64,000 nt of DNA from Tubulanus polymorphus (taxonomy: Eukaryota; Animalia; Nemertea): NCBI RefSeq assembly GCF_964204645.1, contig NC_134035.1, forward strand, positions 13,762,686-13,826,685. Reading direction: 5' to 3'. Numbering within the stretch: the first letter of the stretch is position 1; each line of letters starts with the position of its first letter. The notes beneath the pieces are model-generated. The model was not told where the DNA came from. It worked only from the letters and a program-made list of their open reading frames with translations, and did no database searches. The translations under genes were made by a program, and so were the position numbers. Shown here in pieces: positions 14,401 through 19,047 of the stretch.

Positions 14401-17400
14401 AGTGAGAGGTCAATGAGAGGGAGGGGAGTGAGAGGTCAATGAGAGGTCAATGAAAGGGAGGGAGTGAGATGGGGTCAGTGAGAGGTCAATGAGAGGGGGT
14501 CAGTGAGAGGTCAATGAAAGGGAGGGAGTGAGATGGGGTCAGTGAGAGGTCAATGAAAGGGAGGGGGTGAGATGGGGTCAGTGAGAGGTCAATGAGAGGG
14601 GGTCAGTGAGAGGTCAATGAGAGGGAGGGGAGTGAGAGGAGAGAGGGAGGGGAGTGAGAGGGATAGAGGGGGAGTGAGAGAGGGTCAGTAAGAGACAGTC
14701 AATGAAAGGGAAGGAGAGGAGTGAGATGATACTACTTACCCCCGGTACTATTTCTGCTTTGCCCTCTTCGCGCCACTCGGCTACTTTTGAGTTGATTTGT
14801 TCACGAACTTCACTTTTTATCTCTCCCGTGTCGCCTAGAAACAAAACAATAAATGAGAATAGAATTCAGTTCACGATGGGTGAGGTCAGAGGTTCCGCGG
14901 GGATTGGTGAAACACTGACCTGAGAATAAAGCCAGGAATCCTTGTGTTCTGCTGTTAATGACATCGATCTCGTGTAAACTGACTGTGTGGACGACTTCTT
15001 TACGTTTCTGTAATTCACCTTCAGGACACTGAACAAACCTCGTCTACAATCATAATATCACATGTCGAACAATTATATCAGCATCAGGTTCTACAATCCT
15101 GGACTCAGTTCCACAATTCAGGACTCGGTTCCACAGTTCTGGACCCAGTTCCACTGTTCTAAACTAACAGTCCACTAAAAATCCATTTATTCGTTTCCAG
15201 TAAAACTTTAAACTGATCTATTTTTGATACAATAGAGTTTGAACGGCAGAGAGTAGTTTTACCTGAGGTCCCATAGCGTCGTAATCTCGAGCTCTTGTGA
15301 AAGATCGTCCTAATTTAGTGATTTTTCCCGTGGCTTTATCGATAGTTATAATATCACTATAACAACAAAACATTTTACAACAATTAAATATTAATTCAAA
15401 CAGATTTCACCAGCGATTCAGTAAACATACACGATAACCATGACAACTATGACAACGTACCCGGCTTGAACTTTTTCTTTCGTCAGAGATTCGATCATTT
15501 TCGTTCCTAAATCGTAAATTGTTTCCATTTCTGTCGTTTTTAGAGTCAATTTACCAATTTTCGCCCCCTGTTTAAATATAATTTGTTCCAGTGAATATTT
15601 GAGTGAGACAGTGGCATTGGAAGAGCAGCGACAATCATTTACTGAATGACTTAGAATGACTTAAAATTAAGTGAATTCGCCGCTGCAATATTTAGAACCT
15701 GTCCAAAATCTGTATTTGGCCGCAGCAATCAAAAATTGCTTCCAACGCGCCTGTGAGAGTTAATGATGAAAGCGATTGAATCTTTGTAACTTACCGTTCC
15801 AGTTGCTGGACGATCAATTTGAATTTCTACAACTTCTCCTTCTATTATCTCAGTCTCTTCTCTACGAAAACAGGAAATAAATATATCAGTTTAAAGGGAG
15901 GGAGAGAATGGAGAGGAGAGAATGGAGAGGAAAGAATGGAGGGGAGAAGGGAGGGAGAGGGAGAAGAGAGAATGTAGAGAGGGGGAAAGGAGGGGGAGAA
16001 ATGAGAAACTTTGACAGGGAAATGTAGAATGACTCACTTGATTCTGACACCGATTGATTTTCTGAATGATTGAGTCAATGCTTCTGTTTTAGACATTTCC
16101 AATGAGAATATTTCGCTACCAGCAATACTAGTAAATGGTGTATCGGTTCCTAGAGCCTGAGCCATTCCTGAAATAATACAATACATATATCACTACCAGC
16201 AATACTAGTAAACAGTGTATCGGTTCCTAGAGCCTGAGCCATTCCTGAAATAATACAATACATATATCACTACCAGCAATACTAGTAAACAGTGTATCGG
16301 TTCCTAGAGCCTGAGCCATTCCTGAAATAATACAATACATATATCACTACCAGCAATACTAGTAAACAGTGTATCGGTTCCTAGAGCCTGAGCCATTCCT
16401 GAAATAATACAATACATATATCACTACCAGCAATACTAGTAAACAGTGTATCGGTTCCTAGAGCCTGAGCCATTCCTGAAATAATACAATACATATATCA
16501 CTACCAGCAATACTAGTAAATGGTGTATCGGTTCCTAGAGCCTGAGCCATTCCTGAAATAATACAATACATATATCACTACCAGCAATACTAGTAAACGG
16601 TGTATCGGTTCCTAGAGCCTGAGCCATTCCTGAAATAATACAATACATATATCACTACCAGCAATACTAGTAAACAGTGTATCGGTTCCTAGAGCCTGAG
16701 CCATTCCTGAAATAATACAATACATATATCACTACCAGCAATACTAGTAAATGGTGTATCGGTTCCTAGAGCCCGAGCCATTCCTGAAATAATACAATAC
16801 ATATATCACTACCAGCAATACTAGTAAACAGTGTATCGGTTCCTAGAGCCCGAGCCATTCCTGAAATAATACAATACATATATCACTACCAGCAATACTA
16901 GTAAACAGTGTATCGGTTCCTAGAGCCTGAGCCATTCCTGAAATAATACAATTCATATATCACTACCAGCAATACTAGTAAATGGTGTATCGGTTCCTCG
17001 AGCCCGAGCCATTCCTGAAATAATACAATACATATATCACTACCAGCAATACTAGTAAACGGTGTATCGGTTCCTAGAGCCTGAGCCATTCCTGAAATAA
17101 TACAATACATATATCACTACCAGCAATACTAGTAAATGGTGTATCGGTTCCTAGAGCCTGAGCCATTCCTGAAATAATACAATACATATATCACTACCAG
17201 CAATACTAGTAAATGGTGTATCGGTTCCTAGAGCCTGAGCCATTCCTGAAATAATACAATACATATATCACTACCAGCAATACTAGTAAACAGTGTATCG
17301 GTTCCTTGAGCCTGAGCCATTCCTGAAATAATACAATACATATATCACTACCAGCAATACTAGTAAATGGTGTATCGGTTCCTAGAGCCTGAGCCATTCC

Positions 17401-19047
17401 TGAAATAATACAATACATATATCACTACCAGCAATACTAGTAAACAGTGTATCGGTTCCTAGAGCCTGAGCCATTCCTGAAATAATACAATACATATATC
17501 ACTACCAGCAATACTAGTAAACAGTGTATCGGTTCCTAGAGCCTGAGCCATTCCTGAAATAATACAATACATATATCACTACCAGCAATACTAGTAAACA
17601 GTGTATTGGTTCCTAGTGCCTGAGCCATTCCTGAAATAATACAATACATATATCACTACCAGCAATACTAGTAAACAGTGTATCGGTTCCTAGAGCCTGA
17701 GCCATTCCTGAAATAATAGTCAGATACATGAAATAAGAAATTCCGAGCCACCTTGAAGAAAATACTAACACTTCAGCTATTATAACAGTCAGTCCAAAAT
17801 CAAAACTGATTTTACAAAATGATCAACTCTAAAATTGATTAATATCTTCATCAATTCAGATCATTTAAGGAGTTTTTCGTGAAACTGTGACTTCTCAAGG
17901 TTTAGCACGTGTTTTAGGCTTACCCATAGCGATAGCAGTTTTACCAGTTCCAGGCTGTCCAGCAATCATTACAGCTCTACCGGCGATTTTACCATCCTAA
18001 AACAGATTCAAGAAAAAATCATCAAATCACATAAAACTGATCAGATCGTTTGATTGACAGGTCTAGACTCAGTTCCACATCTCTGAATCCAGTTCCACTG
18101 AATATGAAGTAATTTAAACTCAAAATCCAGGATCCTCCATAAAAACTCTCGATTCAGATCTAGAATTCTCGAGTTAAAACAGTTGAAGATGAACTGATTT
18201 CAACTGGGGGTAGGTTGCATAGTCATGGCCTTGACTTAAGACCAGTCTAAGACCAACTTAATTCTTCAGCCAATCAAACAACCTAAGGTCGGTCATAAGA
18301 CCGCTATTGGAACTGGATCCTGTCTATAGTGTTGGGTACCTTAATCATTTCCATGATGACTCCTGCAGCGCGTCGGGCGCTGGTCTGCCCGACCATACCC
18401 TGAGATACCTTCCTAGCTTCCAACGCATCATCCAAACCCAATCCACGAATATGAGAATGAGCGCCTGGAATACACAATCAATATCAATTCAAATACTGCC
18501 CGATTAGAAACTAAAATACGGATCTGGACTCATTTTATGGATTGTACATACCGATGCGTTCAATGCGGGTCACTTCGCGAATCTCTTGCACTTTCTCCGT
18601 TGTCGGCTGTTGTTTTTAAATAGAAAAATGGAAATTCTTAAAAAGCGGTTCAATAAATAAATCCGCACATCAATTGATAAATAATACAGGGCCTGAAGAT
18701 TGGAATCCTGAGCAAGGATTCTCGATGCTGGGATGTCAGTCGGTTGTATTACAACCGACTGACCAGTGACATCCCAGCATCATGAAGACAGGTCTTACTG
18801 ACACAGGCAGCTGACACACACAGTTCGGTTCAGGTTAGCTTATAATAATGTCAAAGTTCAGGTCTTTTATAAATTCCTGGACTGGCTGCAGCAGCAGCAG
18901 CAGCAGCAGCAGCAGCAGCGAGTAGTGGAGTCGAGAGACTGGAGGCTGGAGCCAGGCCACACAACCAACATTATCATCAAATGTTTCAGATGAATTCTTT
19001 ATTCTAACTTTGAAGAAGTACTCGATACTAACCGTTGCCATCTCCAT
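11439..19047 (-). CDS. RUVBL2: RuvB-like AAA+ ATPase 2 (reptin), 15 coding exons
   Basis: Exons 19047-19033, 18606-18552, 18464-18340, 17996-17924, 16167-16038, 15861-15795, 15567-15461, 15356-15263, 15043-14920, 14834-14740, 14045-13927, 13848-13729, 13635-13506, 11678-11558, 11473-11439, all GT-AG and in frame. Motifs: [16 protein letters not shown], Walker A GQPGTGKT, Walker [33 protein letters not shown]-terminus GEEMETS*. Confidence 0.98.
11870..13540 (-). repeat. Tandem array (22 copies, ~70-83 bp) of the RUVBL2 exon-13 3' end plus 5' splice site plus C/T-rich spacer
   Basis: Constant core CACTACAGCTAGTTTAGTTAGCAGAAAACGAAAG|GTAACTTC, identical to the end of exon 13; the authentic donor is at 13505. 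Confidence 0.95.
14072..14730. repeat. Purine-rich minisatellite filling RUVBL2 intron 10 (GAGTGAGAGGTCAATGAGAGGGAGGG-like)
   Basis: Degenerate ~24-26 bp units. Confidence 0.85.
15609..15753. mobile_element. Dispersed TIR element in RUVBL2 intron 6 (CAGTGGCATTGGAAG...CTTCCAACGCGCCTG)
   Basis: Homologous copies at ~37457-37618 and ~63051-63219. Confidence 0.7.
16115..17718 (-). repeat. Tandem array (21 copies, 77 bp) of the RUVBL2 exon-5 3' splice site plus the first ~52 nt of the exon
   Basis: Unit TATATGTATTGTATTATTTCAG|GAATGGCTCAGGCTCTAGGAACCGATACAC(TG/CA)TTTACTAGTATTGCTGGTAGTGA; acceptors run from 17708 to 16168, spaced exactly 20 x 77 nt. Confidence 0.95.
18207..18319. mobile_element. 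Short MITE-like element with CTG TSD in RUVBL2 intron 3
   Basis: Imperfect terminal inverted repeats flanked by CTG/CTG; termini resemble the 21052 element. Confidence 0.5.

Follow-up and report, generated by a model that had tools for sequence, protein, structure and literature searches.

Known junction-spanning repeats and the RUVBL2 array

Among minisatellites that span an exon–intron junction, and thereby repeat a splice site, the closest precedent for the present case is in human F7, where a 37-bp minisatellite of intron 7 spans the exon-7 donor and offers five to nine identical 5′ splice sites (Borensztajn et al. 2006, PMC1557585). Splicing there is confined to the exon-proximal 5′ site, the most upstream one, although the others are functional, and secondary structure was ruled out (PMC1557585). 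Here, we describe an array of this kind in a 64,000-nucleotide stretch of the genome of the nemertean Tubulanus polymorphus (NC_134035.1, positions 13,762,686 to 13,826,685; hereafter the window, in which all positions are counted from its first letter), at the intron-4/exon-5 boundary of RUVBL2. As in F7, the terminal unit of the RUVBL2 array holds the authentic boundary. The exon-proximal copy is the one seen in the RNA contigs of RUVBL2. Whereas F7 repeats a 5′ splice site five to nine times, the unit of the RUVBL2 array, present 21 times, is a complete 3′ splice module that includes 58 nt of exon. F7 is the direct counterpart of a second, mirror array in RUVBL2, which carries 22 donors, and the same reasoning extends to the acceptor array. 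Literature searches aimed at such arrays returned no natural minisatellite spanning an acceptor junction. The RUVBL2 array is thus of a known kind, a junction-spanning minisatellite, of large size and clean structure and located on the 3′ side.

Two other groups of described systems are close to this locus. Tandem duplications of splice sites have been engineered in globin genes, and cis-competition was followed in two-copy constructs in mammalian cells, with conflicting results as far as these studies are summarised in the F7 report (refs 40–42 in PMC1557585). Identical sites compete in cis in both situations, with the outcome set by position and flanking exon sequence, but the constructs hold two engineered copies whereas RUVBL2, an essential gene, holds 21 natural ones. 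Cis-competition between duplicated globin splice sites was reportedly described by Reed and Maniatis in 1986. It is also established that tandem genomic duplication can lead to intron gain or extension, one copy becoming intronic with nonsense-mediated decay (NMD) as a backstop (PMC3443670, PMC2891723, PMC3265369, PMC2809761). As in such duplication-born introns, the duplicate at RUVBL2 carries splice signals and is spliced out, the coding sequence is unchanged and NMD can absorb mis-splicing. In contrast, RUVBL2 gains no new intron, and an existing one was lengthened eight-fold by repeated amplification. Gao and Lynch in 2009 and Zhuo et al. in 2007 are said to have treated intron gain or extension via tandem duplication.

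Structure of the array

The host gene was identified from its exons. In a search of PDB structures with exon 5 only, the exon-5 peptide matches residues 90–131 of RuvB-like 2 (E = 1e-18, vs. 6e-8 for RuvB-like 1), and TIP49 (PF06068) matches the gene exon by exon, with E values down to 4e-18. The genome (268 Mb, 77 contigs) contains two TIP49 genes, this one and a paralogue on contig C3. RUVBL2 is therefore single-copy, and a second copy of it, which was considered, was not found in the genome.

Tandem Repeats Finder (TRF) delimits a single array on the minus strand, with a period of 77, 20.9 copies, 97% matches, no indels and a score of 3040 (Table 1). A motif scan of the same strand finds TTTCAG/GAATGG (the slash marks the splice boundary) at 21 exact sites with a constant spacing of 77 nt, their first exon-like bases running from 17707 to 16167. 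A preliminary description of this locus had proposed that the junction is amplified as 21 near-identical 77-bp units, and had placed the exon-4 donor at 17923 and the productive acceptor at 16168. The repeat search and the motif scan confirm the amplification, and both coordinates are right, as they fall on the G of the GT and on that of the AG, respectively. The units stand head to tail, with CTG, CCA and CCG variants interspersed along the array, as in a minisatellite, a class whose units measure roughly 10–100 bp. Only 7 of the 77 positions vary among units, and a genome search found no copy of the unit outside the RUVBL2 locus.

At its two ends the array runs on into the gene, unit 21 into exon 5 and unit 1 into the ancestral intron, so that the authentic boundary lies inside the terminal unit. 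Unit 1 (17707) is not of the repeat type, as it has kept the ancestral intron tail, while the productive acceptor and units 2–20 are preceded by a repeat-derived tail. The earlier statement that the spliceosome meets 20 equally strong acceptors needs correction for decoy 1, which resembles the other sites only from −11; the other 19 decoys equal the used site over at least −15 to at least +9. The likeness extends much further in some units: decoy 5 is identical to the used acceptor from −200 to +52 (252 nt), and several further decoys are identical to it from at least −45 to +52. All 20 decoys share two fixed changes relative to the real exon, in which AGC GAA has become AGT GAT (GCGAA to GTGAT). 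Microhomology at the duplication junction is limited to 2 nt. Without the 20 extra units, intron 4 would measure 216 nt (87–343 nt for the neighbouring introns); it now measures 1,756 nt.

As a side observation, the main unit variants follow the path CCA > CCG > CTG, and the change from AGCGAA to AGTGAA is likewise a C>T at a CpG. This pattern is compatible with the decay of methylated CpG in a gene body.

The acceptor seen in RNA

Five sequencing runs contain the locus, all as assembled contigs, from which rare isoforms are lost. In run X4 (2014, study P2), a 1,608-nt spliced contig covers exons 3–7 and joins 17923 to 16166/8, skipping 1,756 nt with GT..AG ends; exon 5 is present in it without differences, and its length fits a normal mRNA. 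In run X3 (2024, study P1), one contig contains exons 3–4 followed by 28 letters equal to the start of a unit, and a second contig of 1,737 nt begins at the first base of exon 5, again without differences. In line with the earlier proposal, the exon-proximal acceptor is the one seen in the RNA of both studies. No decoy junction and no unproductive isoform were found among the contigs of these runs, which drop rare isoforms. The productive exon-proximal junction is thus the only one seen in contigs from two studies; such contigs leave room for a minor use of other sites, and they show only indirectly that the array is on the expressed allele.

Run X3 also carries an exact 107-nt array contig (16775–16881) with a depth of 33, and the X3 sample therefore carries the array. 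This contig was considered as a possible sign of decoy use. The 31-mers concerned occur on average 9.9 times in the array, and after correction for k-mer multiplicity the array RNA amounts to about 3.4x per copy, vs. 147–263x for the exons, i.e. about 2% of exon depth. This is an ordinary level of pre-mRNA, and decoy use was rejected as the source of the contig.

The productive mRNA would look the same if the array were present on one allele only, or over-expanded in the assembly, with the normal mRNA coming from a short array-free allele. Nothing would then be learned on acceptor choice. Such an allele would yield the same mRNA and offers no diagnostic 31-mer, no contig spans the array, and minisatellites are usually polymorphic. 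We nevertheless consider this explanation improbable. In DNA run X1, variant-specific units are recovered without mismatch at 13–21x, close to the 11–16x of the flanks, which speaks weakly against hemizygosity, and such units are also found without mismatch in RNA run X3, from another sample. Moreover, the assembly is highly contiguous, and if it was built from long reads, as we assume, single reads would span the 1.6 kb of the array. Arrays of the same style also exist at other loci (POLR1B and the mirror array at exon 13). The use of the last acceptor on array-bearing alleles is therefore supported, in part indirectly, by three elements: RUVBL2 is essential and single-copy, the array has about full depth in the assembled individual, and it is present in a sample with normal mRNA.

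Consequences of decoy choice

Read-through from each of the 20 decoys meets a stop within 20–64 codons, usually directly after EWLRL. Each unit also carries, at +48, a weak donor-like site (CTG/GTAGTG) whose use would give an in-frame mini-exon of 48 nt. The claim of the preliminary description that every upstream choice leads to a premature stop is thus correct for read-through, and has to be given up for this second outcome.

Taken further, the units could be cassette mini-exons, running from each acceptor to CTG/GTAGTG and adding repeated 16-residue inserts after the Walker A motif. Their length is a multiple of three and their frame is free of stops, and some real donors of RUVBL2 are also weak (e.g. 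GTACCC). However, the 1,608-nt contig passes straight from exon 4 to exon 5 at the length of a normal mRNA. Agreement of the donor-like site with the donor consensus, and its pairing with U1, are limited to about four positions; nearly this sequence also stands in the real exon, at the equivalent place, and is left uncut. From the donor-like site to the next acceptor there are 29 nt, which leaves no room for an intron. The decoys carry nonsynonymous changes, and an insert at this point of the AAA+ ATPase core is unlikely to be tolerated. We regard mini-exons as extremely unlikely.

The array was also compared with recursive splice sites (ratchet points, AG/GTRAGT), which are likewise internal 3′ splice sites within a long intron. 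The juxtaposed 5′ site of ratchet points is absent from the RUVBL2 array, so that stepwise, scar-free removal is impossible: all 21 sites read cag/GAATGG, the resulting junction would be ATGG/GAAT, and no GT is regenerated at any of them. The recursive-splicing ladder suggested earlier is therefore ruled out by the sequence.

Tests for a function of the decoys

We then considered whether the array is a functional decoy system, in which 20 acceptors divert a tunable share of transcripts to NMD or soak up U2AF/U2, the number of copies setting the output of RUVBL2. All decoys are intact, and decoy 5 matches the used site over the whole interval given above; an early stop follows every decoy, and a mirror donor array is present in the same gene. 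The likeness to unproductive-splicing autoregulation through poison exons is that decoy use would give an early-stop transcript. Unlike in that system, no unproductive isoform was detected in the contigs, which drop rare forms, nor is conservation in evidence, and the RUVBL2 product does not belong to the splicing factors.

No coding constraint is visible in the decoys. Their exon-derived part shows P>L (via CCA>CCG>CTG, a path of CpG decay), Q>R, L>Q, L>R, D>N and E>D, i.e. about six nonsynonymous events vs. three synonymous ones, and the last unit retains the residues conserved in RuvB-like 2. With 7 variable positions out of 77, the invariance of the acceptor cores is compatible with chance (about 0.12), and a constraint on these cores would be indistinguishable from the effect of a recent origin. 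Masking of the decoys by RNA structure was rejected, since three units gave no better fold than shuffles of their sequence (z = +1.1).

Furthermore, no decoy junction was found among the contigs of the two studies, the array RNA stands at about 2% of exon depth, junction-spanning arrays are not in excess over plain intronic ones (see below), and 20 sites would be negligible as a sponge compared with all the introns of a cell. The NMD sink and the splicing-factor sponge proposed in the preliminary description are thus unsupported, and we hold a functional decoy array to be very unlikely.

Probable origin of the array and of the acceptor choice

The array is very probably a young minisatellite that is now part of intron 4, is neutral and leaves the exon-proximal acceptor as the chosen one. 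A tandem duplication of about 77–80 bp would have spanned the intron-4/exon-5 boundary of RUVBL2. The 2-nt microhomology at the junction is as expected for an origin by slippage or end-joining duplication. The upstream duplicate would then have turned intronic, and the unit would have been amplified to 20 extra copies through slippage or unequal exchange. Each unit amounts to a complete 3′ splice module, in which a U/G-rich tract and CAG lie between a TGAT branch-point-like motif at −23 and the first 58 nt of exon 5. The A at 16190, within GTGAT, is likely the branch point of the productive acceptor, given that TGAT or CTGAT precedes the real acceptors of RUVBL2 exons 3, 4 and 6 and that GTGATAT stands at −22 in the POLR1B array.

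From such a series, the spliceosome would join the exon-4 donor to the copy that continues into the remainder of exon 5. Exon definition is the most likely explanation of this choice, as the last copy alone is followed by the other part of the exon and, 130 nt downstream, by a real donor. Because decoy 5 does not differ from the used site between −200 and +52, the information that decides between them should lie beyond +52, in the purine-rich remainder of exon 5 and in the real donor. Rare decoy products with early stops would probably be cleared by NMD. Rather than being a new regulatory system, the array most likely arose as a harmless side product of a genome rich in intron minisatellites.

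Several points weigh against this reading. All RNA evidence consists of assembled contigs, which are blind to rare isoforms and hence to a low level of decoy use. An array-free allele would yield an identical productive mRNA, and neither the presence of the array in the X4 sample nor its zygosity in the X3 sample is established. No read or contig spans the array, as short-read contigs break inside it, and the number of copies rests on the assembly. Finally, intron definition is the usual mode for short introns. Under intron definition, the intact ancestral acceptor of unit 1 should win, given its distance of only 216 nt from the donor, yet it is not the site seen in the mRNA.

For RUVBL2 itself, the effect is probably small, the array behaving as extra intron. 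The locus nevertheless presents a natural cis competition among 21 acceptors, in which the ancestral one lies 216 nt from the donor and the site found in the mRNA is 1.5 kb further on. If the outcome is as described on array-bearing alleles, the deciding information must be located beyond the first 52 nt after the AG, either within the exon body or at the donor that follows. This is a testable statement on 3′ splice-site choice in an organism with short introns.

Other arrays and frequency of junction-spanning repeats

The mirror array of RUVBL2 (11870–13540) contains 22 copies of AAG/GTAACTTCC, i.e. the end of exon 13 and its donor, with a spacing of 70–83 nt, a higher-order period of 459 bp and an exon-proximal copy at 13505. 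A CT-rich tract and then ACAG stand upstream of each copy. A further acceptor-side array was found in POLR1B (contig C10, 12902251–12902721), where about 10 units of 43 bp reproduce the acceptor together with the initial 12 nt of the GYDMED exon. Its last copy alone is productive, and the older, more degraded units are farther from the exon. GTGATAT is common to the tails of the RUVBL2 and POLR1B arrays and, as noted above, lies at −22 in the latter. A common mobile element behind the arrays was rejected, since the tail of the mirror array is CT-rich and unrelated, and the tail of the RUVBL2 acceptor array is derivable from its own exon and intron.

To estimate how often arrays span junctions, 14 other conserved genes (TIP49, RPB2 and CCT families), with about 81 kb of sequence around them, were analysed together with RUVBL2, about 88 kb in all. 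Eleven arrays were found near the 14 other genes, and only one of them, that of POLR1B, overlaps an exon; two arrays close to exons proved on inspection to be purely intronic. With the five arrays of RUVBL2 added, junction-spanning arrays represent 3 out of 16. For random survivable duplications of these unit lengths in or across introns of 120–215 nt, the expected junction-spanning fraction is 0.27–0.70 (mostly 0.3–0.5). There is thus no enrichment over random seeding, and if anything a deficit. The genome-wide enrichment of junction-spanning repeats put forward as a check in the preliminary description does not appear in this sample of conserved genes. Its suggestion of an undescribed system is also not upheld: junction arrays are a minority and not enriched, and human F7 intron 7 provides a donor-side precedent (PMC1557585).

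The window is dense in minisatellites. On the simplest reading of these data, small tandem duplications arise at a high rate in compact genes; the exonic ones are lost, and the intronic or junction-spanning ones survive if the exon-proximal site is used. A stronger proposal would be that splicing in this organism obeys an unusually strict exon-proximal rule, with junction copies accumulating freely or even serving to adjust, according to their number, the unproductive splicing and NMD of essential genes such as RUVBL2 and POLR1B; we give it very little credence. Acceptor- and donor-side arrays collected genome-wide would provide many replicates, and the pattern merits an annotation-based study.

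The RUVBL1 paralogue also contains an array (C3:27630872–27631302), with 18 copies of a 24-bp unit. It starts 24 nt past a donor, every unit ends with TTACAG, and no exon sequence is included.

Features of the locus and of the window

The coordinates of the features discussed above are given in Table 1.

Table 1. Elements of the RUVBL2 splice-site arrays, with positions in the window
Feature	Position	Strand	Basis
RUVBL2 exon 4, Walker A region; donor GT at 17923-17922	17924..17996	-	Spliced contigs of X3 and X4; translation
Intron 4 as spliced, 1,756 nt, GT..AG	16168..17923	-	Joint in X4 contig
Ancestral 3′ end of intron 4: CTGAC and TTCAT branch-point-like motifs, pyrimidine tract, AG at 17709-17708; feeds decoy unit 1	17708..17760	-	
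20 decoy units of 77 nt: 58 nt derived from exon 5 and 19-nt intron-derived tail ending in CAG	16168..17707	-	
In each decoy unit: GTGAT at -23 of the next acceptor; weak CTG/GTAGTG at +48	16168..17707	-	
Whole tandem array, 77 bp x 20.9	16108..17718	-	TRF
GTGAT of unit 20, A at 16190 (-23 from exon 5)	16189..16193	-	Sequence comparison
RUVBL2 exon 5, 130 nt, 21st copy, sole productive one; keeps CCA (Pro) and AGC GAA (Ser Glu)	16038..16167	-	
Mirror array, end of exon 13 and donor, 22 copies	11870..13540	-	

Two other segments of RUVBL2 introns (18208–18311 and 15608–15815) reach, in all runs, contig depths between thousands and tens of thousands. These segments are interspersed repeats of high copy number and probably represent small transposons.

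Elsewhere in the window, a block of about 12.6 kb is present three times in tandem (27300–60400), each copy with the same set of satellites: a 30-bp satellite at 27344, 40227 and 52791, a 40-bp satellite at 34409, 47000 and 59529, and a CCCT-rich satellite of 24/47 bp at 33089, 45773 and 58242. Tandem units of 64–76 bp containing GGGTTCGAACCC, which resembles a tRNA T-arm, were found at 24080–24435 and 25987–26152; these arrays may be derived from a short interspersed nuclear element.

Two types of open frames were noted elsewhere in the genome. Matches to Rpb2 domain 6 are present on contig C8 (4526433–4526930 on the plus strand and 4634764–4635261 on the minus strand), about 108 kb apart and in uninterrupted frames of 1,177 and 1,019 residues, whereas the three host genes are intron-rich. 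These frames may be inserts of viral or other foreign type. On a small contig, C31 (7097–8704), a Cpn60 match lies in an intronless open frame of 575 residues, which could be a bacterial contaminant, a symbiont gene or a gene of organelle type.

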